Source: Macrostomum lignano (lineage: Eukaryota). Taken from it: a stretch of DNA of 53,472 bases. A program made the position numbers and the translations under genes. Of the stretch, positions 9,606 through 38,581 are shown one piece after another; positions within the stretch are counted from its first letter, which is position 1; every line of letters starts with the position of its first letter. The stretch lies in the NCBI GenBank assembly GCA_002269645.1, contig NIVC01000828.1:1-53472 (forward strand). The letters run 5' to 3'. The notes beneath the pieces are model-generated. The model was not told the origin of the DNA and searched no databases. It saw nothing but the letters and a program-made list of their open reading frames with translations.

Positions 9606-10250
9606 AAAAAAACCGAGCTTGCTATCTTGGGGATGCTTGCTATCTGGGGGATGCTTGCTGTCTTGGGGATGCTTGCTATCTGGGGGATGCTTGCTGTCTT
9701 GGGGATGCTTGCTGTCTGGGGGATGCTTGCTATCTGGGGGATGCTTGCTGTCTTGGGGATGCTTGCTATCTGGGGGATGCTTGCTATCTTGGGGATGCTT
9801 GCTATCTGGGGGGATGCTTGCTGTCTTGGGGATGCTTGCTATCTGGGGGATGCTTGCTATCTGGGGGATGCTTGCTGTCTTGGGGATGCTTGCTATCTGG
9901 GGATGCTTGCTATCTTGGGGATGCTTGCTATCTGGGGGATGCTTGCTATCTGGGGGATGCTTGCTATCTGGGGGATGCTTGCTATCTGGGTGGATGCTTG
10001 CTATCTGGGGGATGCTTGCTATCTGGGGATGCTTGCTATCTGGGGGATGCTTGCTATCTGGGGGATGCTTGCTATCTGGGGGATGCTTGCTATCTGGGGG
10101 ATGCTTGCTATCTGGGGGATGCTTGCTATCTGGGGGATGCTTGCTATCTGGGGGGATGCTTGCTGTCTGGGGGATGCTTGCTATCTGGAGGGATGCTTGC
10201 TATCTGGGGGATGCTTGCTATCTGGGGGGATGCTTGCTATCTTGGGGATG
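9606..10250. repeat. 18-19-bp minisatellite (GCTTGCTATCTGGGGGAT)n, about 35 copies
   Basis: Directly visible; G-run length varies between copies. Confidence 0.95.
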
Positions 10251-10812
10251 TTTTCTATTTAGGGGGAATGTCTGTTATCTTTGTGAATGCTGTATTTTGT
10301 TGTCTTTCTGCTAATTTTAGAAAAAAAGAAAGAGATTCACAGCAAACATCCTTGTCCGTGACAATTTTACTCGAATAAGGTGATTTATAAAACTGAAGAA
10401 GGAAATGTGCTTAAGAAAAGAAAATGTGCTTTTTTAAATGTTTTCCATGAATAAGTTTTGCTCCTTGCCTATTGAGCGCCCTGAAGAGGGGCACTAGATT
10501 GCTAGTTTTAATTATGAATCAATTACAAAGAAATACTATTTACTCGTACATGTAGATCTAGACCTGAAATATTTAAAAAAATTGACTCATTTTTTTTTCT
10601 CATTGACTCATTGACTCCTGACTCATTTAATTGATTTAAGATTGTCAATCGACCCTTTGAACTTACTCTTGACTTAGGAGCTGGGAGCACCCCTTGAGTT
10701 ACTCTTAATGCTGTTCAATTCACTCCTGACTCCCTGTGTCATATAGCATCCATATTCATAACTTTTGCACTCTTGAACTCCTTAATTAAGAGTCTCGAAA
10801 AAGCATTGACAA

Positions 10813-12553: not shown

Positions 12554-15500
12554 AATTCAACCTGGCCTCGTTGATAAGTGCAGCAGCACCGAAAGCTGCT
12601 GCCGCTGCAGCCGCCGACGCCTGGTTGTCAGTCCATGCCGGCTCCATCGCCAGCAGCCGGCTGGGCTGCAGTCAGCAGGCCCTACGGAAGCAGGACATCG
12701 ACCAGAAGATTCTGCTGAACCAAATCGACGAGTTGGACGCCAGGCTGTCCAAATTGAACGATGCGGCAGTCAGCAGCGCCTATGCCGAGCGGTTCAACAA
12801 AGCACGGAGCGATGTGGCCAGCAATCAGAGCGCCATTGCCTACCTGCGCCAGATAGCCAGCCTCGAGGACGTCCTGTCTGAGTCGTGTCGCCGGGCTGCC
12901 GATCAGGCCATCGGCTTGTCTCAAGGACAGGCGGCGGCCTCCAGCTTCGACAGCAGCAGCGGCAGGGTGAGTCTGGGGGGGGGCGTCGCCTAGGGGGGAC
13001 TGGGGGGACAAGGAGGATATGCGAATTTGAGCAGCTTTGAGTACATCTCTTCTTTCACTTTGCCCTTGGGGATTTGAGCAGCTTTGAGTACATCTCTTCT
13101 TTCACTTTGCCCTTGGGGATTTGAGCAGCTTTGAGTACATCTCTTCTTTCACTTTGCCCTTGGGGATTTGAGCAGCTGTGAGTACATCTCTTCTTTCACT
13201 TTGCCCTTGGGGATTTGAGCAGCTGTGAGTACATCTCTTCTTTCACTTTGCCCTTGGGGATTTGAGCAGCTTTGAGTACATCTCTTCTTTCACTTTGCCC
13301 TTGGGGATTTGAGCAGCTGTGAGTACATCTCTTCTTTCACTTTGCCCTTGGGGATTTGAGCAGCTTTGAGTACATCTCTTCTTTCACTTTGCCCTTGGGG
13401 ATTTGAGCAGCTTTGAGTACATCTCTTCTTTCACTTTGCCCTTGGGGATTTGAGCAGCTGTGAGTACATCTCTTCTTTCACTTTGCCCTTGAGGATTTGA
13501 GCAGCTGTGAGTACATCTCTTCTTTCACTTTGCCCTTGAGGATTTGAGCAGCTGTGAGTACATCTCTTCTTTCACTTTGCCCTTGGGGATTTGAGCAGCT
13601 GTGAGTACATCTCTTCTTTCACTTTGCCCTTGGGGATTTGAGCAGCTGTGAGTACATCTCTTCTTTCAATCTTGCTTGGGAAATTGAGCAACTTTTTTTA
13701 CTTAATTTCTGTAGAAGAAGAACTCAAAGGCTTGGCCATCACCCCCACAATTCGCATTCAACAGCTAATCAGCAGTGAGGTGTTGCAGACCTGGGAATGG
13801 GTGACTCGGCTCGCCGAGCTGACCCAGCTGCACCTGAAGAACTCGGCAGATTATCACTCGTTCTACCACGACGCCAACGAGCTGGACGGACTGATCAACT
13901 CGCGAAAGCTGACTAACGCTCAAGTCATTGGTTCGATTCCGCCAACAGGACAGCTGAGCTCTATGCAGCGGATGAACACGGTCTTGAGTGTGAGTTTCTA
14001 ACGTGGAGATTGATGCGACTGTAAAGTGGCCAAAGTCCAAGGATTCGGGAGGATCTTCCAAGGATACATAATAACTGTAGGACTGGAAAGTAGCAAATCA
14101 TGGCACCAGGGGCTTTAGCATCAGGGGCTTTAGCACCACGGGCTTTAGCACCAGGGGCTTTAGCACCAGGGGCTTTAGCACCAGGGGCTTTAGCACCAGG
14201 GGCTTTAGTACCAGGGCTTTAGCACCAGGGGCTTTAGCACCAGGGGCTTTAGCACCAGGGGCTTTAGCACCAGGGGCTTTAGCACCAGGGGCTTTAGCAC
14301 CACGGGCTTTAGCACCAGGGGATTTAGCACCAGGGGCTTTAGTACCAGGGGCTTTAGCACTAGGGGCTTTAGCACCAGGGGCTTTAGCACCAGGGGCTTT
14401 AGCACCACGGGCTTTAGCACCAGGGGCTTTAGTACCAGGGGCTTTAGCACCAGGGGATTTAGCACCAGGGGCTTTAGCACCAGGGGCTTTAGCACCAGGG
14501 GCTTTAGCACCAGGGGCTTTAGCACCAGGGGCTTTAGCACCAGGGGATTTAGCACCAGGGGCTTTAGCACCAGGGGCTTTAGCACCAGGGGCTTTAGTAC
14601 CAGGGGCTTTAGCACCAGGGGCTTTAGCACCAGGGGCTTTAGCACCAGGGGCTTTAGCACTAAATGTTTGTGCAATATAGCATATAAAAAGTATTGAACA
14701 GTTATGGAAGTAAAAAATGTTATTATTTTTTCTCCCTATTTTGCAGGACAATTTTTCGAATTTCCTCATGCTATGGCAGCGAGCTGACCAGCTCGTGTCG
14801 CGCAGTCATCGAATTGTCCCGGTTTACCGGCGCAATCAACCGCTGGAGACGCCTCATCCGGGACGTAACATCTTCCGGTTTGATGACGGAGAGGTGAGAG
14901 TGCCATTTGTCGGAGAGTGTTTAGTAGTGTCGGAGAGTGTTTAGTAGTGTCGGAGAGTGTTTAGTAGTGTCGGAGAGTGTTTAGTAGTGCCGGAGGGTGT
15001 TTAGTAGTGTCGGAGACTGTTTAGTAGTGTCGGAGAGTGTTAATTATTGTCGGTGGTGTTTAGTAGTGTTGGAGTGTGTTTAGTAGTGTCGGAGAGTGTT
15101 TAGTAGTGTGGGAGAGTGTTTAGTAGTGTCGGAGAGTGTTTAGTAGTGTCGGAGAGTGTTTATTACTGTCGGAGAGTTTTTAAGAATATCGTCGAATGAA
15201 TTCACTGTTAAAATATTCGATGATGTTTCATAATGTCCTGTAATAAGATTCGAAGAAGGCATGTAGTATCGTACAAGTATTTATCTTGTAGGAGAATGTT
15301 TACACTGTATGAGTGTTTATACGAGAGTAAATGTAGTCTTTATAAGTTTACAAGAGTTTTTTCTGTAAACTCCAACGTTCGTTCGTCCTACAGAACACGT
15401 TGCTGGATTCGGAAGAAGTCGCGGTGCTTGACAATACGAAGCCGTTGACCTGGAAGGTGCGAAAAACTGACGGCACAGTGATGGAGGTGCCCAGCATCTG

Positions 15501-18500
15501 CATCTGGCTGCCGCCACCCGACACAGAGTCTGGGGAAGTGGCTCTCGTGTAAGTGACCTCGGTGATTTGCTCAGATCAGCTGTCACACTCATTTTTTGTT
15601 TGCTCTGTTGTGGGATTGCTCCTAAGATTCTGTAGGATGAGATGCTCTGTTGCGGGCTTGCTCCTAAGATTCTGTAGGATGAGATGCTCTGTTGCGGGCT
15701 TGTTCCTAAGATTCTGTAGGATGAGATGCTCTGTAGCGGGCTTGCTCCTAAGATTCTGTAGGATGAGATGCTCTGTAGCGGGCTTGCTCCTAAGATTCTG
15801 TAGGATGAGATGCTCTGTTGCGGGCTTGTTCCTAAGATTCTGTAGGATGAGATGCTCTGTTGTGGGCTTGTTCCTAAGATTCTGTAGGATGAGATGCTCT
15901 GTTGTGGGATTGTTCCTAAGATTCTGTAGGATGAGATGCTCTGTTGTGGGATTGTTCCTAAGATTCTGTAGGATGAGATGCTCTGTTGTGGGATTGTTCC
16001 TAAGATTCTGTAGGATGAGATGCTCTGTTGTGGGATTGTTCCTAAGATTCTGTAGGATGAGATGCTTTTTGGGTTTGTTCCTAAGATCCTGTAGGACAAA
16101 AGTCATTTGGCTTTTGTCGAATCGGTGACTCGTAACTCTGGATACCATGGTATCTTCTGGGTGGATTAGTCTAGACTAGGAATTCAGAAGGTGAGCTGGG
16201 AGGAGGCGGATGAACCCTGAACGCTAATATATTCATGTGCATGTTTCCTATAACGCGTAACTCTGGATATCGTCTGGGTGGATTAGTCTAGACTAGGAAT
16301 TCAGAAGGTGAGCTGGGAGGAGGCGGATGAGCACTGAACGCTAATATATTCATGTGTATGTTTCCTATATAATGATCCCATTTCATTGGTGTTTATGAAA
16401 TGGGATATTTACTGTCGCACAAGCCATGCGCTGCGCATTCCAGATAGAAAAAAATGTTCTATAGTTCACGTTAGATTACAGAATATGATTGGGCATAGCA
16501 TGTCTGAATTGGAATCACCTCAAGGCGTACTTTGTATCCATGTAATGCATTTCAGCATTCGCAAGAAGTTGTTGAACGCGTGGGCGGCCCTGCTCAGCAA
16601 ATCCAGGGCCTGGCTGGTCAGCTGTTACACCGCCTATTTGCGAAGCCTCGGCCACGGTTCAGTGGTAAGTCCTTGATATTTAGCCAGTAGTGTTTATAAA
16701 TCATGTAGAAAACAACGATTGATACGCTTGGAAATTTCAGCCCGTGTTCTCTAAACTGTTGCCTCAAGTTCGGGAGTTTCTGAACCACCTGGAACGAGCC
16801 TCTGGTGACATCCTGATCGACGTCGAAGGTCGACAGCAGTTGATGAATGCGCTGCGAGTTGTTCGTAATAATCTTGTCGCCTGCGGTGAGCTGCTGAGAC
16901 CACGTGCTCAGTTTTTCATGACAATATTTATCGTTATCGTATCTTTTTCGGATCTGGGTGTGGGTGCCATTTCTGAATGGAACCTGATAGTGAATGTAAT
17001 TTCTGATTATGCATGCCATTTCTGATGGTGAATGCCATTTCTGATGGTGAATGCCATTTCTGATGGTGAATGCCATTTCTGATGGTGAATGCCATTTCTG
17101 ATGGTGAATGCCATTTCTGATGGTGAATGCCATTTCTGATGGTGAATGCCATTTCTGATGGTGAATGCCATTTCTGATGGTGAATGCCATTTCTGATGGT
17201 GAATGCCATTTCTGATGGTGAATGCCATTTCTGATGTTTAATGCCATTTCTGATGGTGAATGCCATTTCTGATGGTGAATGCCATTTCTGATGGTGAACG
17301 CCATTTCTGAATCGGGTCTGATGGTGAACGCCATTTCTGAATCAGATCTGATGGTGAACGCCATTTCTGAATCAGATCTGATGGTGAACGCCATTTCTGA
17401 ATCAGATCTGATGGTGAACGCCATTTCTGAATCAGATCTGATGGTGAACGCCATTTCTGAATCAGATCTGATGGTGAATGCCATTTCTGATGGTGAACGC
17501 CATTTCTGAATCAGATCTGATGGTGAATGCCATTTCTGATGGTGAACGCCATTTCTGAATCGGGTCTGATGGTGAACGCCATTTCTGAATCAGATCAGAT
17601 GGTGAACGCCATTTCTGAATCAGATCTGATGGTGAACGCCATTTCTGAATAGAATCTGATGCCAAGTTGGATTCCTGGTGTGACTGTTCCTTCAGATATA
17701 AAAATTTGTAACCAATAAAAAATCTAGGCCATTTTAAATAAAAGTAAACAGAATAAATTTGCAGCACATTACCTATTAGTAACAGTCTTCAGTGTTAAAC
17801 AACACGCAATAAAATCCCGAATTTCGAATCAGACTCCGAGGAGCAGAGCGCTGTCCGAGAGAGTGAGCTATCGCGACAAAAATCGTTGCTGCAGAAACTG
17901 ATGGACCACCTAAAACACTGGAAGCACCTGAGGGAGCAGGTCGATTTTTCCACCCCGGATCAACGGACTCTGTTGAAAGAGACTACTAATGTGCTGTCGG
18001 CATTCAGCGCTATGAAGTAAGCTTGAAAAAAGCCTTCGCGTTGCTTTCTATCTGGGTAATTGTTTCGGTTGACGAGCAGTCCTATTGTTTCAAAGTTAAC
18101 CAAAGTTGGCTAGTACTAAGCCACCACCTTGCTGCCTTCGAGTAATTCTTAGCATCGAGCTGCCGTAGGAGCTCAAATTCTCAGTAGTTCTCAGTAGTTC
18201 TTAGTAGTTCTCAGTAGTTCTTAGTAGTTCTCAGTAGTTCTCAATAGATCTCCGTAACTCTCAGTAGTTCTCAGTAGTTCTCAGTAGTTCGCAGTAGTTC
18301 TCAGTAGTTCTCAGTAGTTCTCAGTAGTTCGCAGTAGTTCTCAGTAGTTCTCAGTAGTTCTCAGTAGTTCTCAGATAGTTCTCAGTAGTTCTCAGTAGTT
18401 CTCAGTAGTTCTCAGTAGTTCTTAGTAGTTCTCAGATTGTTCTCAATAGTTCTCAGTAGTTCTCAGTAGTTCTTAGTAGTTCTTAGTAGTTCTCAGATAG

Positions 18501-21500
18501 TTCTCAGTAGTTCTCAGTAGTTCCAGTAGTTCTCAATAGTTCTCCGTAACTCTCAGTAGTTCTCAGTAGTTCTCAGTAGTTCTCAATAGTTCTCCGTAAC
18601 TCTCAGTAGTTCTCAGTAGTTCTCAGTAGTTCTCAATAGATCTCCGTAACTCTCAGTAGTTCTCAGTAGTTCTCAGTAATTCTCAATAGATCTCCGTAAC
18701 TCTCAGTAGTTCTCAGTAGTTCTCAGATAGTTCTCAGTAGTTCTCAGTAGTTCTCAGTAGTTCTCAGTAGTTCTCAGTAGTTCTCAGTAGTTCTCAGTAG
18801 TTCTCAGTAGTTCTCAGTAGTTCTCAGTAGTTTTCAGTAGTTCTCAGTAGTTCTCAGTAGTTCTCAGTAGTTCTCAGTAGTTCTCAGTAGTTTTCAGTAG
18901 TTCTCAGTAGTTCTCAGTAGTTCTCAATAGTTCTCAGTAATTCTCAATAGTTCTCCGTAACTCTCAGTAGTTCTCAGTAGTTCTCAGTAGTTCTCAGATA
19001 GTTCTCAGTAGTTCTTAGTAGTCAGTGAGCTTATTATGGCCTCTTAAATTTGTCTATCAAAACTCTTACAGCCAGTTCCAGAGCGACAGCATGTCCCAAA
19101 TAGAAGAGCTTCAGGCTAGAATAGACGAATGGCAGTTCCACAGTCCTCTATCGAGAGCCTCGTCCGCTAGGCAAAGCGATGTTCTGGTACGTAAAAATCA
19201 AGCTCAAAAATATAGATTTTCTGAGGAAACTAAAGCGAAACCAATGAAATTTTATAGGAAGCAGTAGCTTCGCGACTCGACAGAGACGTCAGTAACGAGC
19301 GCAGGCCTGGTTGGGAGGCAGACAGACGTGACATGCTCACGTACAACTTAATGTCGGAGACTGTTCAGCACTCCAGGCTTAGCGAGCACTGGCCCAGCAG
19401 CAAGTCAGTCACAAGCTGCGCCACTCAAACCGACGTGGCGACTGATAGAGATAAAGACAAAGACAAAGACTGGTCAAAGCATGTGGACGCATTTTCAAGC
19501 AACGCCCATCAGAAAAGTGTTCAACCAACGCACAGCGCCGAAACTGTTAGCATAGTTTACAGTTACATTGAAGAAAACGAGGAGGAAGTGAAGGAATATC
19601 TTAGACAGAAGTGCCCTCATCCGATTGTCAACGCAACGTCAGCTGATTGGACAGTAGCCAAAGACGAAGAGTCAACAGATCAGCTGGACAGTCGGCAAAG
19701 CTTCAAGGTTGCGACGTCAAGGCAACCAATGATAGAGACAGTCGGTGTTGATTGTCAAACCGAACTACCGACATTGGCGACGACGGAGCTTCGTTTCGAA
19801 CGAGCTTTTGCCGATGGGAATGCTATTGGTCGCCAGCGCACAATCGAGGCCAGCGTTGCTTGTAAGCCTGCGGATAAATCGCTGACGCGGGACACGGAGA
19901 GCCGATTCGCGATAGATAAAAGCAGCACCGAAACAGCGACAGTAAACTTAGAATACTTTACAAGCAATGTACTGGTCACAACACCGTCGCTCATGGTCAC
20001 CGCAACAGGCACCTTCATTGAAGACGAAATCATCGAAGTGCCAGAAAAAGCAAAACAGCTAAAAGCTGGCGTTCCAAAAGAACCAACCAAATTAATTGAT
20101 GCATGCGTAGGTTTTCAACAGGAAACCGTGGTAGCCGAATGTCAAAGCTTCGTTGAAACACCCTACATTGAAAGTACAGTCCAAGCCAAGAGAACCGTAA
20201 GCGACTCCAGCGTAAGCCATGAAGTCTCCCTAAAAGAAGGTTCAATCAGTATCAGAATGCAACCAAAGTTGTCGGAAGCAGGAACTTTCCTTGAAACACA
20301 GTCTCACGAAAACACCGTGAAAACGAAACGTTCCGTCTGTGATTCCATGATCAGAATCAAAGCCGCGGTAGTTGATAACTGCGTGACTACAAGCCCTCAG
20401 AATTCAGCAAAAAGCTGCGCCAGCTCGCTTGAGCTCGAGTACGAAGCCGCTGGCATACAAGTAAAGCAGGCCGTTTCTGAAATGGGCTCTTGTGAGCAAA
20501 TCCTTACGGCCGACGGGGGCATGAGATACAAGGACGAGCCGAAACTGGAAGCGTGCGCCAGCTCGCTCGAGTTCTCCTTCGAGCATGGCTCGTCTCGAGC
20601 AGCGTCCGTCGTCAAAGAGGCTTCTGTACAAGTCAATCAGCCAGTCGGAGCCATGGGAGCGTTCGACGAAGTGCTCACAGCCGACGGCGGCATGAGATAC
20701 AAGGACGAGCCAAAACTGGAAGCATGCGCCAGCTCGCTTGAGCTCGAGTACGAAGCCGCTGGCATACAAGTAAAGCAGGCCGTTTCTGAAATGGGCTCTT
20801 GTGAGCAAACCCTTACGGCCGACGGGGGCATGAGATACAAGGACGAGCCGAAACTGGAAGCGTGCGCCAGCTCGCTCGAGTTCTCCTTCGAGCATGGCTC
20901 GGCTCGAGCTGCGTCCATCGTCAAAGAGGCTTCTGTACAAGTCAATCAGCCAGTCGGAGCCATGGGAGCGTTCGACGAAGTGCTCACAGCCGACGGCGGC
21001 ATGAGATACAAGGACGAGCCGAAACTGGAAGCATGCGCCAGCTCGCTTGAGCTCGAGTACGAAGCCGCTGGCATACAAGTAAAGCAGGCCGTTTCTGAAA
21101 TGGGCTCTTGTGAGCAAATCCTTACGGCCGACGGGGGCATGAGATACAAGGACGAGCCGAAACTGGAAGCGTGCGCCAGCTCGCTCGAGTTCTCCTTCGA
21201 GCATGGCTCGGCTCGAGCAGCGTCCGTCGTCAAAGAGGCTTCTGTACAAGTCAATCAGCCAGTCGGAGCCATGGGAGCGTTCGACGAAGTGCTCACAGCC
21301 GACGGCGGCATGAGATACAAGGACGAGCCGAAACTGGAAGCATGCGCCAGCTCGCTTGAGCTCGAGTACGAAGCCGCTGGCATACAAGTAAAGCAGGCCG
21401 TTTCTGAAATGGGCTCTTGTGAGCAAACCCTTACGGCCGACGGGGGCATGAGATACAAGGACGAGCCGAAACTGGAAGCGTGCGCCAGCTCGCTCGAGTT

Positions 21501-24500
21501 CTCCTTCGAGCATGGCTCGGCTCGAGCAGCGTCCGTCGTCAAAGAGGCTTCTGTACAAGTCAATCAGCCAGTCGGAGCCATGGGAGCGTTCGACGAAGTG
21601 CTCACAGCCGACGGCGGCATGAGATACAAGGACGAGCCGAAACTGGAAGCATGCGCCAGCTCGCTTGAGCTCGAGTACGAAGCCGCTGGCATACAAGTAA
21701 AGCAGGCCGTTTCTGAAATGGGCTCTTGTGAGCAAATCCTTACGGCCGACGGGGGCATGAGATACAAGGACGAGCCGAAACTGGAAGCGTGCGCCAGCTC
21801 GCTCGAGTTCTCCTTCGAGCATGGCTCGGCTCGAGCAGCGTCCGTCGTCAAAGAGGCTTCTGTACAAGTCAATCAGCCAGTCGGAGCCATGGGAGCGTTC
21901 GACGAAGTGCTCACAGCCGACGGCGGCATGAGATACAAGGACGAGCCGAAACTGGAAGCATGCGCCAGCTCGCTTGAGCTCGAGTACGAAGCCGCTGGCA
22001 TACAAGTAAAGCAGGCCGTTTCTGAAATGGGCTCTTGTGAGCAAATCCTTACGGCCGACGGGGGCATGAGATACAAGGACGAGCCGAAACTGGAAGCGTG
22101 CGCCAGCTCGCTCGAGTTCTCCTTCGAGCACGGCTCGGCTCGAGCAGCGTCCGTCGTCAAAGAGGCTTCTGTACAAGTCAATCAGCCAGTCGGAGCCATG
22201 GGAGCGTTCGACGAAGTGCTCACAGCCGACGGCGGCATGAGATACAAGGACGAGCCGAAACTGGAAGCATGCGCCAGCTCGCTTGAGCTCGAGTACGAAG
22301 CCGCTGGCATACAAGTAAAGCAGGCCGTTTCTGAAATGGGCTCTTGTGAGCAAATCCTTACGGCCGACGGGGGCATGAGATACAAGGACGAGCCGAAACT
22401 GGAAGCGTGCGCCAGCTCGCTCGAGTTCTCCTTCGAGCATGGCTCGTCTCGAGCAGCGTCCGTCGTCAAAGAGGCTTCTGTACAAGTCAATCAGCCAGTC
22501 GGAGCCATGGGAGCGTTCGACGAAGTGCTCACAGCCGACGGCGGCATGAGATACAAGGACGAGCCGAAACTGGAAGCATGCGCCAGCTCGCTTGAGCTTG
22601 AGTACGAAGCCGCTGGCATACAAGTAAAGCAGGCCGTTTCTGAAATGGGCTCTTGTGAGCAAATCCTTACGGCCGACGGGGGCATGAGATACAAGGACGA
22701 GCCGAAACTGGAAGCGTGCGCCAGCTCGCTCGAGTTCTCCTTCGAGCATGGCTCGGCTCGAGCAGCGTCCGTCGTCAAAGAGGCTTCTGTACAAGTCAAT
22801 CAGCCAGTCGGAGCCATGGGAGCGTTCGACGAAGTGCTCACAGCCGACGGCGGCATGAGATACAAGGACGAGCCGAAACTGGAAGCATGCGCCAGCTCGC
22901 TTGAGCTCGAGTACGAAGCCGCTGGCATACAAGTAAAGCAGGCCGTTTCTGAAATGGGCTCTTGTGAGCAAATCCTTACGGCCGACGGGGGCATGAGATA
23001 CAAGGACGAGCCGAAACTGGAAGCGTGCGCCAGCTCGCTCGAGTTCTCCTTCGAGCATTGCTCGGCTCGAACAGCGTCCGTCGTCAAAGAGGCTTCTGTA
23101 CAAGTCAATCAGCCAGTCGGAGCCATGGGAGCGTTCGACGAAGTGCTCACAGCCGACGGCGGCATGAGATACAAGGACGAGCCGAAACTGGAAGCATGCG
23201 CCAGCTCGCTTGAGCTCGAGTACGAAGCCGCTGGCATACAAGTAAAGCAGGCCGTTTCTGAAATGGGCTCTTGTGAGCAAATCCTTACGGCCGACGGGGG
23301 CATGAGATACAAGGACGAGCCGAAACTGGAAGCGTGCGCCAGCTCGCTCGAGTTCTCCTTCGAGCATGGCTCGGCTCGAGCAGCGTCCGTCGTCAAAGAG
23401 GCTTCTGTACAAGTCAATCAGCCAGTCGGAGCCATGGGAGCGTTCGACGAAGTGCTCACAGCCGACGGCGGCATGAGATACAAGGACGAGCCAAAACTGG
23501 AAGCATGCGCCAGCTCGCTTGAGCTCGAGTACGAAGCCGCTGGCATACAAGTAAAGCAGGCCGTTTCTGAAATGGGCTCTTGTGAGCAAATCCTTACGGC
23601 CGACGGGGGCATGAGATACAAGGACGAGCCGAAACTGGAAGCGTGCGCCAGCTCGCTCGAGTTCTCCTTCGAGCATGGCTCGGCTCGAGCAGCGTCCGTC
23701 GTCAAAGAGGCTTCTGTACAAGTCAATCAGCCAGTCGGAGCCATGGGAGCGTTCGACGAAGTGCTCACAGCCGACGGCGGCATGAGATACAAGGACGAGC
23801 CGAAACTGGAAGCATGCGCCAGCTCGCTTGAGCTCGAGTACGAAGCCGCTGGCATACAAGTAAAGCAGGCCGTTTCTGAAATGGGCTCTTGTGAGCAAAT
23901 CCTTACGGCCGACGGGGGCATGAGATACAAGGACGAGCCGAAACTGGAAGCGTGCGCCAGCTCGCTCGAGTTCTCCTTCGAGCATGGCTCGGCTCGAGCA
24001 GCGTCCGTCGTCAAAGAGGCTTCTGTACAAGTCAATCAGCCAGTCGGAGCCATGGGAGCGTTCGACGAAGTGCTCACAGCCGACGGCGGCATGAGATACA
24101 AGGACGAGCCGAAACTGGAAGCATGCGCCAGCTCGCTTGAGCTCGAGTACGAAGCCGCTGGCATACAAGTAAAGCAGGCCGTTTCTGAAATGGGCTCTTG
24201 TGAGCAAATCCTTACGGCCGACGGGGGCATGAGATACAAGGACGAGCCGAAACTGGAAGCGTGCGCCAGCTCGCTCGAGTTCTCCTTCGAGCATGGCTCG
24301 GCTCGAGCAGCGTCCGTCGTCAAAGAGGCTTCTGTACAAGTCAATCAGCCAGTCGGAGCCATGGGAGCGTTCGACGAAGTGCTCACAGCCGACGGCGGCA
24401 TGAGATACAAGGACGAGCCGAAACTGGAAGCATGCGCCAGCTCGCTTGAGCTCGAGTACGAAGCCGCTGGCATACAAGTAAAGCAGGCCGTTTCTGAAAT

Positions 24501-27500
24501 GGGCTCTTGTGAGCAAATCCTTACGGCCGACGGGGGCATGAGATACAAGGACGAGCCGAAACTGGAAGCGTGCGCCAGCTCGCTCGAGTTCTCCTTCGAG
24601 CATGGCTCGGCTCGAGCTGCGTCCATCGTCAAAGAGGCTTCTGTACAAGTCAATCAGCCAGTCGGAGCCATGGGAGCGTTCGACGAAGTGCTCACAGCCG
24701 ACGGCGGCATGAGATACAAGGACGAGCCGAAACTGGAAGCATGCGCCAGCTCGCTTGAGCTCGAGTACGAAGCCGCTGGCATACAAGTAAAGCAGGCCGT
24801 TTCTGAAATGGGCTCTTGTGAGCAAATCCTTACGGCCGACGGGGGCATGAGATACAAGGACGAGCCGAAACTGGAAGCGTGCGCCAGCTCGCTCGAGTTC
24901 TCCTTCGAGCATGGCTCGGCTCGAGCAGCGTCCGTCGTCAAAGAGGCTTCTGTACAAGTCAATCAGCCAGTCGGAGCCATGGGAGCGTTCGACGAAGTGC
25001 TCACAGCCGACGGCGGCATGAGATACAAGGAGGAGCCAAAACTGGAAGCATGCGCCAGCTCGCTTGAGCTCGAGTACGAAGCCGCTGGCATACAAGTAAA
25101 GCAGGCCGTTTCTGAAATGGGCTCTTGTGAGCAAATCCTTACGGCCGACGGGGGCATGAGATACAAGGACGAGCCGAAACTGGAAGCGTGCGCCAGCTCG
25201 CTCGAGTTCTCCTTCGAGCATGGCTCGGCTCGAGCTGCGTCCATCGTCAAAGAGGCTTCTGTACAAGTCAATCAGCCAGTCGGAGCCATGGGAGCGTTCG
25301 ACGAAGTGCTCACAGCCGACGGCGGCATGAGATACAAGGACGAGCCGAAACTGGAAGCATGCGCCAGCTCGCTTGAGCTCGAGTACGAAGCCGCTGGCAT
25401 ACAAGTAAAGCAGGCCGTTTCTGAAATGGGCTCTTGTGAGCAAACCCTTACGGCCGACGGGGCATGAGATACAAGGACGAGCCGAAACTGGAAGCGTGCG
25501 CCAGCTCGCTCGAGTTCTCCTTCGAGCATGGCTCGGCTCGAGCAGCGTCCGTCGTCAAAGAGGCTTCTGTACAAGTCAATCAGCCAGTCGGAGCCATGGG
25601 AGCGTTCGACGAAGTGCTCACAGCCGACGGCGGCATGAGATACAAGGACGAGCCGAAACTGGAAGCATGCGCCAGCTCGCTTGAGCTCGAGTACGAAGCC
25701 GCTGGCATACAAGTAAAGCAGGCCGTTTCTGAAATGGGCTCTTGTGAGCAAATCCTTACGGCCGACGGGGGCATGAGATACAAGGACGAGCCGAAACTGG
25801 AAGCGTGCGCCAGCTCGCTCGAGTTCTCCTTCGAGCATTGCTCGGCTCGAGCAGCGTCCGTCGTCAAAGAGGCTTCTGTACAAGTCAATCAGCCAGTCGG
25901 AGCCATGGGAGCGTTCGACGAAGTGCTCACAGCCGACGGCGGCATGAGATACAAGGACGAGCCGAAACTGGAAGCATGCGCCAGCTCGCTTGAGCTCGAG
26001 TACGAAGCCGCTGGCATACAAGTAAAGCAGGCCGTTTCTGAAATGGGCTCTTGTGAGCAAATCCTTACGGCCGACGGGGGCATGAGATACAAGGACGAGC
26101 CGAAACTGGAAGCGTGCGCCAGCTCGCTCGAGTTCTCCTTCGAGCATGGCTCGGCTCGAGCAGCGTCCGTCGTCAAAGAGGCTTCTGTACAAGTCAATCA
26201 GCCAGTCGGAGCCATGGGAGCGTTCGACGAAGTGCTCACAGCCGACGGCGGCATGAGATACAAGGACGAGCCGAAACTGGAAGCATGCGCCAGCTCGCTT
26301 GAGCTCGAGTACGAAGCCGCTGGCATACAAGTAAAGCAGGCCGTTTCTGAAATGGGCTCTTGTGAGCAAACCCTTACGGCCGACGGGGACATGAGATACA
26401 AGGACGAGCCGAAACTGGAAGCGTGCGCCAGCTCGCTCGAGTTCTCCTTCGAGCATGGCTCGGCTCGAGCAGCGTCCGTCGTCAAAGAGGCTTCTGTACA
26501 AGTCAATCAGCCAGTCGGAGCCATGGGAGCGTTCGACGAAGTGCTCACAGCCGACGGCGGCATGAGATACAAGGACGAGCCGAAACTGGAAGCATGCGCC
26601 AGCTCGCTTGAGCTCGAGTACGAAGCCGCTGGCATACAAGTAAAGCAGGCCGTTTCTGAAATGGGCTCTTGTGAGCAAATCCTTACGGCCGACGGGGGCA
26701 TGAGATACAAGGACGAGCCGAAACTGGAAGCGTGCGCCAGCTCGCTCGAGTTCTCCTTCGAGCATGGCTCGGCTCGAGCAGCGTCCGTCGTCAAAGAGGC
26801 TTCTGTACAAGTCAATCAGCCAGTCGGAGCCATGGGAGCGTTCGACGAAGTGCTCACAGCCGACGGCGGCATGAGATACAAGGACGAGCCGAAACTGGAA
26901 GCATGCGCCAGCTCGCTTGAGCTCGAGTACGAAGCCGCTGGCATACAAGTAAAGCAGGCCGTTTCTGAAATGGGCTCTTGTGAGCAAATCCTTACGGCCG
27001 ACGGGGGCATGAGATACAAGGACGAGCCGAAACTGGAAGCGTGCGCCAGCTCGCTCGAGTTCTCCTTCGAGCATGGCTCGGCTCGAGCAGCGTCCGTCGT
27101 CAAAGAGGCTTCTGTACAAGTCAATCAGCCAGTCGGAGCCATGGGAGCGTTCGACGAAGTGCTCACAGCCGACGGCGGCATGAGATACAAGGACGAGCCG
27201 AAACTGGAAGCATGCGCCAGCTCGCTTGAGCTCGAGTACGAAGCCGCTGGCATACAAGTAAAGCAGGCCGTTTCTGAAATGGGCTCTTGTGAGCAAACCC
27301 TTACGGCCGACGGGGACATGAGATACAAGGACGAGCCGAAACTGGAAGCGTGCGCCAGCTCGCTCGAGTTCTCCTTCGAGCATGGCTCGGCTCGAGCAGC
27401 GTCCGTCGTCAAAGAGGCTTCTGTACAAGTCAATCAGCCAGTCGGAGCCATGGGAGCGTTCGACGAAGTGCTCACAGCCGACGGCGGCATGAGATACAAG

Positions 27501-29453
27501 GACGAGCCGAAACTGGAAGCATGCGCCAGCTCGCTTGAGCTCGAGTACGAAGCCGCTGGCATACAAGTAAAGCAGGCCGTTTCTGAAATGGGCTCTTGTG
27601 AGCAAATCCTTACGGCCGACGGGGGCATGAGATACAAGGACGAGCCGAAACTGGAAGCGTGCGCCAGCTCGCTCGAGTTCTCCTTCGAGCATGGCTCGGC
27701 TCGAGCAGCGTCCGTCGTCAAAGAGGCTTCTGTACAAGTCAATCAGCCAGTCGGAGCCATGGGAGCGTTCGACGAAGTGCTCACAGCCGACGGCGGCATG
27801 AGATACAAGGACGAGCCGAAACTGGAAGCGTGCGCCAGCTCGCTCGAGTTCTCCTTCGAGCATGGCTCGGCTCGAGCAGCGTCCGTCGTCAAAGAGGCTT
27901 CTGTACAAGTCAATCAGCCAGTCGGAGCCATGGGAGCGTTCGACGAAGTGCTCACAGCCGACGGCGGCATGAGATACAAGGACGAGCCGAAACTGGAAGC
28001 GTGCGCCAGCTCGCTCGAGTTCTCCTTCGAGCATAGCTCGGCTCGAGCAGAAGTTAAAGCTAAGAATTCTTCGGTGTGTGTCGATATGTCGAAGAAAGTG
28101 GTTTTGATTGGAAATGGAATTAAGGCTTGTTACATACCAAAAGTTGTGTCATTTGAAGGTTCGCTTTGTTTTGAATCGGTTGAAGTCTCGTGTGTTTTTG
28201 GAAGGAAATACGTGGAATCTTTTGTTAAGGCTCTTCCTGAGCTGCGTGCCACGGGTTGTCACAAAGAATCCTTTACCTCCGACGCTGGTATTCGCTGTTG
28301 TAATAGCAACAAATTTGGATTTTGCGAAGCGGCTTTAGTGGTCCCTGTTCGGGATAGTTATGTTTCTGTCCGAGCTATCACTGATGAAGCCATTGTTAAG
28401 GCTAACTATAGAGTGCTCTCAAAGAACAGCGGATCGTTATGGTTGTTCGAAACCGGAAGTGCTAGCGTAAGAAAGCAGGATCAGGTTTTGATAAGATCTT
28501 CTGGAAGCCACTGGGAGAGTTTTGCCGCTAAGGAAATTTGCAGCACCCATGCCTGCATCGAGGAGTCCAAGGAGTTTCGCGCCGCCATACTGAAATTCGA
28601 CGCCTCAATTGTCCCAAATGAGTCGGCTTCGTTCGTTTCGAGTAGCGGCTGTTGCTACGAGGTGCAGTTAAACAGTATTTTAGTGTCAGTTAAGCCGGAG
28701 ACTGTGTCAGCGCCGCACGCCCGTCTAGAAGCCAGCGTAACAAGACGCGAACGAACCGCATTGGAATCGACCGACTCCGTCAGCAGTGCTCGGACCCAGC
28801 TGGGTGTAACAAGGCGCGAAGGAACTGCATTGGAATCGACCGACTCCGTCAGCAGTGCCCGGGCCCAGCTGGGTGTAACAAGGCGCGAAGGAACTGCATT
28901 GGAATCGACCGACTCCGTCAGCAGTGCCCGGGCACAGCTGGGTGTAACAAGGCGCGAAGGAACTGCATTGGAATTGACCGACTCCGTCAGCAGTGCCCGG
29001 GCCCAGCTGGGTGTAACAAGGCGCGAAGGAACTGCATTGGAATTGACCGACTCCGTCAGCAGTGCCCGGGCCCGGCTGGGTGTAACAAGGCGCGAAGGAA
29101 CTGCATTGGAATCGACCGACTCCGTCAGCAGTGCCCGGGCCCAGCTGGGTGTAACAAGGCGCGAAGGAACTGCATTGGAATCGACCGACTCCGTCAGCAG
29201 TGCCCGGGCACAGCTGGGTGTAACAAGGCGCGAAGGAACTGCATTGGAATTGACCGACTCCGTCAGCAGTGCCCGGGCCCAGCTGGGTGTAACAAGACGC
29301 GAAAGAACCGCATTGGGATCGACTGACTCCGGCAGCAGTGCCCGGGCCCAGCTGGGTGTGCCAATTACGGCCAGGTTGACCTGGAGCCGGACTCCGCGTG
29401 GTTCACAGCTGGATTTGCGCAGCGACGATGGTGTTTTCGAAGGATTTGACTAA
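12554..29453 (+). CDS. Paralog 1: plakin-domain (spectrin-like repeats + SH3) protein with a giant repetitive terminal exon, about 3900 aa; start codon not located
   Basis: Phase-consistent GT-AG exons: 12554-12966, 13765-13989, 14747-14893, 15394-15548, 16556-16664, 16741-16885, 17833-18016, 19072-19186, 19258-29453 (stop TAA; one 1-nt G-run deletion near 25460). QTWEWVTRLAELTQLHLKNSADYHSFYHDANEL and VLDNTKPLTWKVRKTDGTVMEVPSICIWLPPPD match the plakin SR4 and SH3 motifs of desmoplakin/plectin. AATAAA at 29958. Confidence 0.85.
13027..13668. repeat. 47-bp intronic minisatellite, about 14 copies
   Basis: Unit TTGAGCAGCTTTGAGTACATCTCTTCTTTCACTTTGCCCTTGGGGAT. Confidence 0.95.
14101..14661. repeat. 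15-bp intronic minisatellite (GGGGCTTTAGCACCA)n, about 37 copies
   Basis: Directly visible; same family as 40354-41760. Confidence 0.95.
14910..15178. repeat. 20-bp intronic minisatellite (GTCGGAGAGTGTTTAGTAGT)n, about 13 copies
   Basis: Directly visible; begins just after the donor at 14894. Confidence 0.93.
15600..16095. repeat. 42-bp intronic minisatellite, about 12 copies
   Basis: Unit GATGAGATGCTCTGTTGTGGGATTGTTCCTAAGATTCTGTAG. Confidence 0.95.
16127..16367. repeat. Direct duplication of about 115-125 bp (2 copies) in an intron
   Basis: CGTAACTCTGGATA...TCTGGGTGGATTAGTCTAGACTAGGAATTCAGAAGG...ATGTTTCCTA occurs twice in tandem. Confidence 0.85.
17011..17660. repeat. Intronic minisatellite: 19-bp unit (GCCATTTCTGATGGTGAAT) grading into a 30-bp variant (+ATCAGATCTGA)
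   Basis: Directly visible. Confidence 0.93.
18178..19021. repeat. 10-bp intronic minisatellite (TCTCAGTAGT)n, about 80 copies
   Basis: Directly visible. Confidence 0.95.
20410..28048 (+). repeat. Coding tandem array: 24 x 309-bp (103-aa) dimers of a 46-aa A unit and a 57-aa B unit, then 1 full and 1 partial extra B
   Basis: A = LTADGGMRYKDEPKLEACASSLELEYEAAGIQVKQAVSEMGSCEQI; B = LTADGGMRYKDEPKLEACASSLEFSFEHGSARAASVVKEASVQVNQPVGAMGAFDEV. The 309-bp period is confirmed by the ORF-track spacing. Confidence 0.97.
28735..29360 (+). repeat. Coding tandem array: 9 x 69 bp (23 aa, GVTRREGTALESTDSVSSARAQL)
   Basis: In frame at the C-terminus of paralog 1. Confidence 0.95.
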
Positions 29454-33760: not shown

Positions 33761-36700
33761 ATGGCTTCGCTGGAGACGCCAGACAATTCCGATGTAATCG
33801 AGGCGGCGCAAGCCTGGCTGACGGCCAACGCTGACGTGATCGCCTCGCCGCGACTGGGCTGCAGCCAGCAAGCCCTGCTGCACCAGAGCCGAACGCAGGA
33901 GTCGCTCCTTGCCAAGATTGCCAGCCTAGAAGAGCAGCTGGCGATCGCTTCATCGTCCGAAGCGCAGAAGCTACTTCTGGAAGATTCGTCCTGCGCGCAG
34001 CAGCTGCAGCAGGCTCGCGGCCAAGTGTCAATCAACAAGGACGCTATCGCCTACCTGAGACAGATCTCCAGCCTTGAAAGCAACCTAGCCGAGTGCTGCC
34101 GCCAAGTGGAGGGCCAGGCCATCGCTCTGTCCCAGCGTGACAACACGGAACTATTGGAGAAAAAGGTGCGAAATACTTAAATAGTGCTTCGTTCAAAATC
34201 CACTCACAAGCTTGACAAGTTTCGAAAAGTATTATAGAGAGTTACAAAGCTCAAAATGCAGAAAGACTCGTACACTTGAGAGATTCAAAAATTCAAATTT
34301 CGTCATTAAGATTTGCTTTATTACCGCTCTCGGTAGCATATCATAAAAACTGGCTTGTTGAACTTGCAAAAAAGCCTGAGCAAAGCACAGAACTACAAGT
34401 AGTGATGACTAGAAAGTCAGAGTCGCATTGAATATATCGATTTTTAGGAGAAAAACCATGCAATAGCTTACATAAGATAACTCCGGTGCTCAGGTGTATG
34501 ATAAATCATTAATTTTTCTTTAACTATTCCATAAAACGTCACTTCCCAGACTTTCTTTTTACTATACAAGAGCTATCAATCCTGCAAAGCGTTTGCTTAA
34601 ACCCAAAACTTCAGCAACTCAGCAAGGAGGTGTCGCAGACCTGGGAATGGGTGACTCGGCTCGGCGAGCTGACCCAGCTGCACCTGAAGAATTCGGCAGA
34701 TTATCAATGGTTCTATCACGAAGCCAACGAGCTTGAAGAGGTGATCAACTCGCGAAATCTGGCTAACGCTCAAGTCGTTGGTTCGATTCCGCCAACAGGA
34801 CAGCTGAGCTCTATGCAGCGGATGAACACGGTCTTGAGTGTGAGTTTCTTCTGTGCTTGCGAAAAAGTTCACGGGATAAATGGGATTAAATTGGATTTCG
34901 TGTCAAAGCGTCAGCAGGCAAATACAGTGGAGGAACGCAGAGGAAGACCAACGGGCCGCTGTCCCTCCATAACTAACTTTTGCCATCTGTTGGATGTGGC
35001 ATACGAGCTGCACTGGCCCAGAAGACAGTGGCAGGGGCGCCCACGAAGACACTGTATATCGCAGCGCCCTTTAGGGGTTGCGGCCTCCTCCAATGCTCAT
35101 GGTCCAGCGAAAAAAAGACAAGAAATATTCACAGAAGGGTTGTGAGTACGAAATCCTCTCACAACCAGAGTTGAGACACGGGCTCACAAAGGGTGTACGT
35201 GTACAAGCAGCCCTTTGACTTTCTTACCTTCAGGCATGTACAACACCCTCTGTGCTTTGGGGGTTGGCCCTGATGGGTGAGAATCCAATAAATAACTTTA
35301 CCATCCACAGTCCTCATCATTATACGTCGGAAACCTTTTTACCTCCACTTGCAATGATGACCTGTAATAGGTGTACTGGTATCAAGGCGTGAAACCTAAA
35401 AAAATATTTCTCTTTTCTTCAGGAAAACTACTCACAGCTGCTGCTGCTGTTACAGCGCACCGACCAGCTGATGTCGAAGAGTCACAGCGTGGTGCCGCTG
35501 TACCGCCGCTGCCAGCCAGTGGATGTTGGCTATCCGGCCAGAAATATTTTCCGTTTCGACGATGGAGAGGTTTGCTTGCTTATGCGTATCTGGGGTCTGC
35601 AGTGTGGGTCTGCAGTGTGGGGTCTGCAATGTTGGGTCTGCAGTGTGACGTCTGCAGTGTGGGTCTGCAGTGTGGGTCTGCAGTGTGGGGTCTGCAATCT
35701 TGGGTCTGCAGTGTGACGTCTGCAGTGTGGGGTCTGCAGTGTGGGGTCTGCAGTGTGGGTCTGCAGTGTGGGGTCTGCAATCTTGGGTCTGCAGTGTGAC
35801 GTCTGCAGTGTGGAGTCTGCAGTGTGGGGTCTGCAGTGGGATATATGCATGTTCCGATGTTCAATCACTATGAATCTTATGCTCATTATGCATCCTATGC
35901 TCACTGATGCATCCTATGCTCACTGATGCATCCTATGCTCACTATGCATCTTATGCTCACTATGCATCCTATGCTCAGTGATGCATCTTATGCTCACTGA
36001 TGCATCCTATGCTCACTATGCATCCTATGCTCAGTGATGCATCTTATGCTCACTGATGCATCCTATGCTCACTGATGCATCCTATGCTCACTATGCATCT
36101 TATGCTCACTGATGCATCCTATGCTCACTATGAATCTTATGCTCACTGATGCATCCTATGCTCACTATGCATCCTATGCTCACTATGCATTCTATTCTCT
36201 CCCACCAGAACACTCTGAACGACTCCGAGGAGGTGACAGTACTGGACAACTCAAACTCATTCAACTGGAAGGTGGCCAAGGCGGATGGAACAGTGATGGA
36301 GGTGCCCAGCATCTGCATCTGGCTCCCGCCGCCAGACACTGAGGCTGTTGAAGTGGCTGTCGTGTGAGTCAGCCTAATTTCCACACCGATTTCCCCAAAA
36401 ATTTTGCATGCTCACCAACGAATGGTTAACTCTTCGTATAACTTTAATGTATAACCAAGTGGACATTAACAGAAAGGATGCAATGAAGGAGTCAATCGAA
36501 AAAAAACATGCCGTAACTTTAGGGACACTAAATTGCTTAGGACATGTGTCCCCAAGACGTTGTCCACTTCTGGATGGTGCGGTAGCTGACTTTGCGGCCA
36601 AGGTCCCATTATCTTGACAACGGGCCCGGGTTGTTTGAAGGTACACGCCAGAGGCGCGGTCGCCACCAGTAACCTGTGCAGGAGTACACCCGGTGAAAAC

Positions 36701-38550
36701 TCCCACAAACGAGACGGAACTCCCGGTCTGTATAACAGACGAAGGTTCTTGACCCAACTGTACTAGAGATGGCCGATTGAGGGACTCCATGCGAGTAATA
36801 CAAGGACAGTCTAGTCCGTGCTGGAAATGAGGATTTTTGCATAGGGGGATCTTCTAGCTGGTAAGCGATAATTCTCGACCAAAATTCCCTCCTAAGCCTC
36901 AAGATCCCGAGGGTGGATAATAGATGACGCCATTTTAATGTCTTTCCAGTTCATATAGATGGATTCAATGCGGCAGGGGGATGAGGAAGTGCAGGTTCCA
37001 GAGCTCTCTCGTGGTGCACATTCTACAGGGACTTATTTAGAAGCACTGTTACTGCTATGATTATTTGATTGGGTTTGGCTCATACTCGGTGATCTCCACT
37101 CTGATCCTCAGCTTCTATTCCATGCCTTGTGACAGGCGCACTCTCTACTCACACTTCATAACACGACTAAGAGCAATGGGGGGAGATTCAAGGGTCGGTC
37201 CAGATAAAAGCTGGGAAAAGTTGCCAGTTCGGGTGCTTTCAGTTTTCAGGGAAGGTTCGGTGTCGCGAGAAAACAGAACTGCAAGAGGGACTGAAACCCA
37301 GCGGACAGGAGAGGGGAAGATGCCGCTCAGGGCTCAAGACAAGCTCCTATTTATAGCCCCGAGATCATGTGTGACGCAAGACCGTGACCTGTCCTTGACC
37401 TCTGTTATCAAGCAACTCTGATGAGGTCACCCGCCAGCCGCGCTATGATTAGAGGAGACATTGGGGTAGGGAGAAGCGGAGAAAATTATTGATTATGGGG
37501 GATTATGTAACAGGCGGGGAAAAGCTTGGGCACATATAGGCGGTCGTAAAGCTGTCACATGATTGACTTCGAACAACAGAAAACAGGTGGGGTTGGTGCT
37601 CGGGGGAGCGGGTGGGCGATAAGCAGGAGTCATTGTGATAACTCATCCCAATGAGTCATCCCAATGAGTCATCCCAATGAGTCATCCCAATGAGTCATCC
37701 CAATGAGTCATCCCAATAAGTCATCCCAATAAGTCATCCCAATTAGTCATCCCAAAGAGTCATCCCAATGAGTCATCCCAATAAGTCATCCCAATGAGTC
37801 ATCCCAATGAGTCATCCCAATGGCTCATCTCGGGGCACAGGTATCACAGAGGAGAAAGGGAGGGTGGATAAAAATTATTGGAGGCCCAGGGCGCTGCTAC
37901 ATTAAATGTAGTGTTTAGAAGTTTTTGAAATAACTTTCTAAGAGTTAGTTCGTCTACCTCGGTGGTCTGGTTCCCGACGTACGCGAGGATCTGCGTCGTC
38001 GCCGCGGGCTTGCCTGGGCTGCCTTCCGCTCTGTGAGGGCGGTCCTGCAGTCTGAGGCCCTTCCGGACCGCCAGAGGGCGGCTTTGTTTCAGGCGGTAGT
38101 CGAAACCGGCCTGCTTTACAACGCCGAGACCTGGACGCTGACAGACTCGCTCGAACATCAAGTCGACGCGGCGCACGCTGGCCTGCTGCGCGCCGCCTTC
38201 AAGATCGGCGACGAGCGAGTCACCAACGCGGCACTCTATCGCCGCGACGGCCGGGCCCGTCCAAGTGACCTGCTGCGCCGTCGGCGACTCCAGCTGGCAG
38301 GCCACATCATCCGCGCCGAGTCGTACTGCCCAGAGCCGGTGCAGGAGGTGCTGCTGCTGACACTGCAGGCACCCTACCGGCGAGGACAGGCGCGCACTCG
38401 GCGTTTCGTCGACTGCCTGCTGGCTGACGCCGGCGCCCTGGACTCTGCCGGCGGAGCGGCCTATGTTCGCACTCTGGCCTTGAGACGCACCCTGTGACAC
38501 TGGAGACTATCCAGTGTACTTTGTTGTTGTTGTTGTTGTTGTTGTTGTTT

Positions 38551-38581
<31 letters not shown>

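Follow-up and report, generated by a model that had tools for sequence, protein, structure and literature searches.

What a protein would do with dozens of copies of a short, glutamine-centred string is the question raised by a 53,472-nucleotide stretch of Macrostomum lignano DNA (contig NIVC01000828.1 of assembly GCA_002269645.1, positions 1 to 53,472; hereafter, the window), in which two giant exons encode long arrays of units bearing the strings GIQV and SVQV. The original prediction, made from the sequence alone, took these strings for tandem binding motifs of the dynein light chain LC8, set on a hidden module of 11-12 amino acids (aa), and proposed either an extremely multivalent LC8-dimerised rod or a cross-beta or solenoid structure. 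The explanation that we favour, with moderate confidence, is that the array is the tail of a plakin-type cytolinker, made of structural repeats that are specific to this lineage and that unequal crossing-over has recently amplified. The indirect tests are divided and on balance lean against the array-wide LC8 model, and the cross-beta or solenoid reading is equally unproven.

The window contains two paralogous genes in tandem, both on the plus strand according to tblastn of gene models, and sharing one architecture, namely a plakin domain followed by a giant repeat exon (the features given below are on this strand unless otherwise stated). In gene 1, the plakin-domain part, with spectrin-like helices and SH3_10, is encoded by upstream exons between 12622 and 19186 (tblastn blocks at about 12622-12924, 13753-13998, 14738-14893, 15391-15549, 16557-16664, 16741-16884, 17799-18017 and 19061-19186). 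The last intron, of 71 nt and of the GT..AG type (donor GT at 19187, acceptor AG at 19256-19257), leads to a giant last exon of ~3,398 codons (19258-29453, with the TAA stop at 29451-29453), and the gene 1 model P0003 accordingly has ...RQSDVL spliced onto EAVASRLD at the start of this exon. The tandem paralog lies 15 kb downstream of the gene 1 giant exon, with its plakin-domain exons at 33761-44029 (tblastn of P0002, 92-100% identity) and its own giant exon from 44115 to 53472, where it continues past the end of the window. Used as a protein query, this paralog-2 exon retrieved NCBI BOX15_Mlig031564g3 with 100% identity, whose coordinates on NIVC01000828.1 match the window, as well as a UniRef entry named "SH3_10 domain-containing protein".

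It is the upstream exons that place these genes in the plakin family. Pfam SH3_10 is found in both (E 9e-11 in gene 1, P0003; E 8e-12 in gene 2), phmmer searches of the upstream exons against the PDB returned desmoplakin (3r6n, E 1.2e-9) and plectin (3pe0, E 4e-9), and AlphaFold predicts SH3 strands and, after them, long helices. Such N-terminal spectrin-like helices with an embedded SH3_10 are shared with plectin, desmoplakin, epiplakin and the invertebrate Shot / VAB-10. A very long repetitive tail encoded in one giant exon is a further common trait, with near-identical tandem copies as in epiplakin. Contrary to these relatives, however, the Macrostomum tail has neither 38-aa plakin repeats nor a predicted helical coiled-coil rod, and its 46/57-aa unit is found only in Macrostomum. 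The giant exons gave no Plectin-repeat (PF00681) or spectrin match in Pfam, even at E<=1, and the AlphaFold secondary structure of the repeats contains no helices of a coiled-coil or spectrin rod. Since the protein carries a plakin domain but neither plakin repeats nor such a rod, it belongs to the plakin family but has a tail of a new kind, and, judged from its plakin domain, it is cytoplasmic. Calponin-homology (CH) domains were not seen in the gene models, and a word-indexed search with the plakin domain as query retrieved Macrostomum proteins only. The UniProt names 'AMOTL1' and 'Nesprin-1' on the gene 2 fragments P0006/P0007 were taken as automatic labels, for which no evidence of real homology was found, although AMOTL1 itself happens to be a validated LC8 client.

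The gene 1 array (20482-28100) consists of alternating 57-aa (171-nt) and 46-aa (138-nt) units, which Tandem Repeats Finder (TRF) and a unit catalogue resolve as 24.1 copies of 309 bp (57 + 46 aa) with 99% DNA identity, whereas the 46- and 57-aa units of gene 2 start at 45612, after a unique part at 44115-45611, and extend to the end of the window (45612-53472). The string counts of the original prediction held in both genes: 24 GIQV and 25 SVQV in gene 1, once counted in the frame with a missing G restored, and 30 SVQV in gene 2, where about 30 had been claimed, summed over frames broken by 1-bp indels. All start-to-start spacings measured between units of the two arrays are exactly 138 or 171 nt, save across frameshift or indel sites; the 57-aa unit is the 46-aa one extended by 11 residues, and unit types that have diverged to 33-67% identity still align gap-free. 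In an exhaustive unit-profile search of 1.84 billion representative proteins only two matches appeared, both of them models of gene 1 or gene 2, and sequence and profile searches of the repeats against Pfam, NCBIfam and the PDB gave nothing above threshold. The repeat is an orphan, lineage-restricted and recently amplified.

The ratio of non-synonymous to synonymous substitution rates (dN/dS) is 0.20-0.44 between diverged unit types and between paralogs, with dS saturated, which argues that the array frame is coding and constrained. This bears on the possibility that the sequence is decaying or neutral, with real frameshifts, pseudogenes, and a long open reading frame (ORF) that merely results from the amplification of a stop-free satellite unit. 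Frame breaks do exist. Gene 1 has one, a 1-bp deletion at 25456-25462, where a G run is reduced from GGGGG to GGGG, because of which one repeat copy measures 308 bp instead of 309; gene 2 has 1-bp frameshifts after ~50636 and ~51150, plus many indels in 52265-53374, and the NCBI gene models are split at its frameshifts into products of 885, 406 and 1826 aa. Moreover, an antisense ORF of 1,679 aa spans the array on the minus strand (20404-25443), the 309-bp unit being stop-free in that frame too, so that ORF length alone says little inside tandem arrays. Against decay stand, besides the dN/dS values, the preservation of the architecture in both paralogs and the nature of the breaks: all those examined are 1-bp changes (the gene 1 one inspected base by base), the gene 1 shift falls in a G run, and the independent gene 1 model P0003 ends in another G-run frameshift, a pattern typical of long-read errors. 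With the missing G restored, the gene 1 giant exon is a single frame from 19258 to its stop. The frameshifts are probably long-read assembly errors rather than signs of pseudogenisation, and decay as an explanation for the array seems highly improbable.

Period tests were run on diverged unit types, which keeps the trivial 46/57/103 periods from dominating, and the hidden 11-12-aa module did not survive them: neither substitution-score nor hydropathy autocorrelation peaks at lag 11 or 12. In a circular column-versus-column BLOSUM62 lag test with column shuffles, the 46-aa unit reached z=0.3 at lag 11 and z=1.1 at both lag 12 and lag 13, and the 57-aa unit z=1.7 at lag 11; the sole peak surviving correction was lag 22 (z=3.8, family-wise p=0.008). 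Hydropathy autocorrelation per unit gave z=-0.5/0.5 and 1.2/-0.6 at lags 11/12, and in the hydropathy spectrum, computed over diverse units totalling 355 aa, z was -1.0 to 0.4 at periods of 11-12. The consensus [DE]x[GAS]xx-hydrophobic, which the module was said to share, is no commoner than expected by chance, with 3 occurrences per 103 aa versus 1.8 +/- 1.2 in shuffles (p=0.26). A strong hydropathy peak at 2.2 aa (z=19.6), considered as evidence of beta-strands, was discarded as a harmonic of the repeat, gone when computed per unit (lag 2 z ~0). As for the diverged flanks of the array, to which the same module had been attributed, they are indeed degenerate copies of the unit (independent E-values, i-E, of 9e-9 and 1.5e-7 with its hidden Markov model, HMM); those ahead of the gene 1 array lie at 20098-20481 (unit-profile hmmsearch, i-E 9e-9, 8e-4 and 1e-21). 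The sub-period would be about 22 aa, not 11-12.

These results can be accommodated by a unit made of two alternating elements: an element A with a Cys (GxCExLL / ECxSxLE), and an element B of the form [DE][GA][GAS][VIM][R/Q][VY]. The 46-aa unit would then be ABAB and the 57-aa unit ABABB, the extra 11 aa of the latter being a further copy of the last element that re-matches the last strand of the unit HMM. This 11-aa duplication is visible, yet non-significant on its own (p=0.16-0.64).

The GIQV and SVQV strings turn out to be copies of the recurring element B, whose centre is R in most copies; that is, they are the B elements with Q in place of the commoner R. The first element, B1 (xVRYK), has R at its centre throughout. 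The second, B2, has Q in the 46-aa units of gene 1 only (GIQV, codon CAA), whereas all three 46-aa types of gene 2, and likewise the corresponding element in each of the 57-aa units, have R (CGA/CGT) here. Only the third, B3 (SVQV), has Q throughout. Two consequences follow. On the one hand, the number of Q-bearing strings reflects common descent and amplification, rather than many independently maintained LC8 sites, and the 49+30 sites are not independent, since all go back to three or four founder units, of which they are near-identical copies. On the other hand, Q is interchangeable with arginine at half of the claimed sites, given the R of the paralog in B2, and glutamine is the most conserved residue of the LC8 motif (PMC6607443). 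As copies of one short element, the strings are thus poor evidence for an LC8 ladder.

Conservation within the unit points elsewhere. In the 46-aa core it extends across the whole unit and peaks at R15, K17, E19, C25 and E30, with the hydrophobic columns also kept, and the element equivalent to GIQV belongs to the least conserved parts. Columns 14-30 of the unit, in both arrays (20482-28100 and 45612-53472), read [VM]R[YF]K[DE]EPK[LV]xECxSxxE and constitute the best conserved stretch, with an invariant Cys and Glu, which makes them a candidate functional motif or structural turn.

Individual sites were scored with two simple matrices rebuilt from Table S4 of PMC6607443 (79 binders and 32 anchor-containing non-binders), which are not the original LC8Pred: a position-specific amino-acid matrix, in bits, with binders scored leave-one-out, and a second one contrasting flank residue classes in binders versus non-binders. 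On the first matrix, validated binders have a median of 14.6 bits (10th percentile 9.6), non-binders a median of 8.8 bits, and the five validated G[IV]QV binders range from 4.0 to 12.0 bits. The LC8 anchor pattern [TVI]-Q-[TV], part of an 8-residue strand motif, is present as IQV (24 times) and VQV (25 times) in gene 1, as VQV (30 times) in gene 2, and as TQT (3 times) in the unique parts. The array peptide EAAGIQVK scored 1.0 bits, with a flank score of -4.67 (under 99% of binders), and GIQVK looks like a non-binder. Even though it has the tetrapeptide GIQV in common with the nNOS site KDTGIQVD, none of the informative flank positions agrees, with A/A for D/T at -4/-3 and K for D at +2. The SVQV peptides KEASVQVN and KEASVQVE reached 4.5 and 7.6 bits, with flank scores of +3.9 (over 91% of binders) and +5.25 (over all binders), so SVQV appears ambiguous as an LC8 site: the flanks are good, the anchor is uncommon, and position -2 is S, in contrast to the G found there in each of the five validated [IV]QV binders. 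Among the other peptides, TSCATQTD scored 16.5 bits, SDSETQTD 18.7, VTGSSQTD 11.4 and MSESTQTK 3.8 (flank score -2.97), and two or three sites of the unique regions look like ordinary LC8 motifs. The ELM pattern LIG_Dynein_DLC8_1, [KR].TQT as quoted in PMC3125787, by which the strings were to be scored, matches no site, as CATQT, ESTQT and SETQT have no K/R at -3.

An LC8 ladder can be formulated from the better of the array strings: in every 57-aa unit the KEASVQV[N/E], possibly joined by the TQT sites upstream, would bind LC8 dimers, and two chains would thereby be zipped, in register, to form a very long rod resembling beads on a string. Such elements number 25 or more in gene 1 and 30 or more in gene 2. 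Like ASCIZ/ATMIN, GKAP/DLGAP1, Nup159 and KANK1, the array has recurrent hydrophobic-Q-hydrophobic anchors, and VQVN and VQVE are the very anchors of the validated ATMIN (ISTGVQVN) and GKAP (QSVGVQVE) sites. In addition to the flank scores of KEASVQV[N/E], above 91-100% of known binders, the ladder is favoured by the invariance of E-A-S-V-Q-V between the paralogs despite synonymous differences, by the very low confidence of structure prediction in the repeats, by the cytoplasmic location deduced for the protein, by the upstream TQT that is conserved in position and the excess of xQT[DE] (5 vs 0.3 expected), and by the precedent of KANK1, whose many weak non-canonical sites are able to build LC8 rods (PMC12803091). 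The spacing of the sites, once considered an argument against LC8, was dropped as such: Q-to-Q distances in the array are 46-103 aa, inside the 11-156 aa of known multivalent clients, and argue neither way.

On the opposite side, SVQV with its 4.5-7.6 bits falls among the lowest 3-8% of validated binders and under the non-binder median, it has S at -2 instead of G, the GIQVK half fails both matrices and is R in the paralog, and the pattern from ELM finds nothing. By definition, LC8 motifs sit in disordered regions, and dense charge is unfavourable (PMC6607443). Unlike the polar disordered linkers of ATMIN, GKAP, Nup159 and KANK1, the sites are embedded here in conserved units that are rich in hydrophobic residues and strongly acidic, that keep their Cys, their aromatic residues and their length, and that are best conserved in their RYK-EPK-EC-S-LE centre and not in the Q element. 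Taken together, such a ladder appears distinctly unlikely. The stricter claim that every KEASVQV[N/E] (25 or more in gene 1, 30 or more in gene 2), plus the conserved upstream TQTs, is a working weak LC8 site is quite improbable; if it were true, the two flatworm plakins would surpass all known LC8 clients in multivalency by a wide margin, with a micrometre-scale ladder anchored by the plakin domain, and a new cytolinker-rod design. Dynein-light-chain families are reportedly expanded in some parasitic flatworms (PMC4265353), and trematodes have EF-hand/DLC-like (dynein-light-chain-like) fusions (PMC12347358); neither is evidence for the plakin gene.

The best LC8 candidate of the locus would lie outside the array, in the unique N-terminal part of the giant exons. 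There, the TQT-type strings listed in the original prediction were all recovered, that is, ATQTD and DCQTE in paralog 1, and STQTK, GCQTA, ETQTD and LQTD in paralog 2. The gene 1 anchor TSCATQTD (19411-19434), which scores over 73% of validated binders, shares an alignment column with the STQTK of gene 2 (MSESTQTK, 44361-44384, its equivalent by paralog alignment) amid otherwise diverged sequence, and in both paralogs the TQT lies exactly 43 residues upstream of a conserved VYxYIxExExEVKxYL...PxPIV motif. This motif is found at 19555-19629 in gene 1, given as VYSYIEENEEEVKEYLRQKCPHPIV, and at 44505-44579 in gene 2 (alignment, BLASTP, AlphaFold), and its first part is predicted to be helical, corresponding to an AlphaFold helix at residues 379-403 of P0005 with a predicted local distance difference test score (pLDDT) of 55-58. 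Around the gene 1 TQT, pLDDT is ~22 and the regional FoldIndex -0.13. The other sites are DCQTE, in the gene 1 unique part (19741-19764), and SDSETQTD in gene 2 (44922-44945; FoldIndex around it -0.20), which is the highest-scoring LC8-type 8-mer of the window, over 89% of validated binders. The unique parts have FoldIndex values of -0.06 to -0.20, and contain 3 TQT versus 0.35 expected, and 5 xQT[DE] versus 0.30 expected, the latter pattern having been picked post hoc. The conserved TQT, in a probably disordered segment just ahead of a short conserved helix, is placed in a context where LC8 commonly assists dimerisation.

Whether the repeats are ordered was addressed with AlphaFold2. For the most diverse units (412 aa, alignment of 7 rows), the mean pLDDT was 24 and the predicted template modelling score (pTM) 0.16, and in the control P0005, comprising SH3, spectrin helices, the unique region and the first repeats in a 4-row alignment, the repeats reached 20-29. 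No confident globular fold, which would have spoken against the LC8 ladder, was thus predicted for the units, albeit from shallow alignments. The plakin part of P0005 showed the correct secondary structure despite a pLDDT of 40-58, and, since a known folded domain gets only this far at shallow depth, the runs have little power. The composition of the units points in the opposite direction, with 29-37% hydrophobic residues and FoldIndex values of 0.00 to 0.10. A disordered polyanionic spacer or entropic spring, PEVK-like and devoid of any LC8 role, possibly carrying another motif such as [VM]R[YF]K[DE]EPK[LV]xEC, would account for the very low pLDDT, beneath that of the folded control, for the net charge of -9 per 103 aa and isoelectric point (pI) of 4.45 of the array, and for the fact that its best-conserved stretch is a short central motif. 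It does not sit well, however, with an invariant unit length without indels between units of only 33-50% identity, with the conservation of the hydrophobic columns at that hydrophobic content, or with a FoldIndex that is not negative. Such strict unit length and gap-free alignment of diverged types would be unusual for disordered linkers, and we regard the spacer as unlikely.

We therefore return to a structural repeat tail as the preferred explanation. According to it, the plakin domain would be followed by a probably disordered segment of ~360 residues, with the positionally conserved TQT and the short conserved helix, and next by the array, acidic and very long, in which the 46- and 57-aa units are repeated. 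The array would have grown by recent unequal crossing-over, with purifying selection keeping it in frame, and would have a structural role as a rod or spacer of regular build, probably rich in strands. In this arrangement, it may replace the coiled-coil rod or plakin-repeat tail of other plakins and keep the plakin domain, which binds junctions, at a great distance from the C-terminus.

Several observations weigh against this explanation. At equal shallow depth, the pLDDT of the repeats is clearly under that of the folded plakin domain of the same protein, from which the repeats may be disordered on their own. The ABAB organization is borderline, as a gapped half-versus-half profile test of the unit was non-significant (p=0.085), and per-unit hydropathy autocorrelation, even though best at lag 22, reached z values of 2.2-2.5, under the family-wise threshold of ~3. 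The four 57-aa unit types of the two paralogs all retain E-A-S-V-Q-V unchanged, even though its codons differ synonymously; this element is under selection and, with its LC8-favourable flanks, could be a real binding motif. Finally, literature searches on the gene identifier and on Macrostomum plakins found nothing.

Other features of the window concern the gene 1 C-terminus and the neighbouring DNA. The gene 1 array is followed by a Cys-rich unique C-terminal segment of ~210 aa (28101-28736, from the translation), which has no recognisable domain, with only below-threshold matches in Pfam and none in NCBIfam, and, at the C-terminus itself, by a 23-aa (69-bp) repeat, VTRREGTALESTDSVSSARAQLG, present in nine copies (28737-29359; TRF and translation) and without database match. 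Upstream of gene 1, an ORF of 401 aa on the minus strand (4820-6022) is syntrophin-like (Syntrophin C-terminal PH, E 4.5e-20; PH_17; PH; partial PDZ) and represents an unrelated neighbour. Introns and intergenic DNA contain many long and very regular minisatellites, with units of 10-47 bp in up to 94 copies, among others at 573-2126, 9617-10267, 13025-13690, 14103-14660, 18178-19022, 40354-41761 and 42201-43864. One 15-bp unit, GCACCAGGGGCTTTA, fills introns of both paralogs (14103-14660 and 40354-41761).

For genome scans, this locus carries a caution, as dozens of motif matches in a 99%-identical array amount to one or two independent observations. If the SVQV elements did bind LC8, the principle of KANK1, where LC8 makes rods, would be taken here to extreme valency; if the repeat is instead a regular strand-rich rod, it would constitute a new structural module. 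The locus offers an example of giant-exon evolution through tandem amplification in a minisatellite-rich genome and, for the plakin family, what would be a plakin-type cytolinker whose usual rod or plakin-repeat tail has been swapped for a lineage-restricted, recently amplified repeat.

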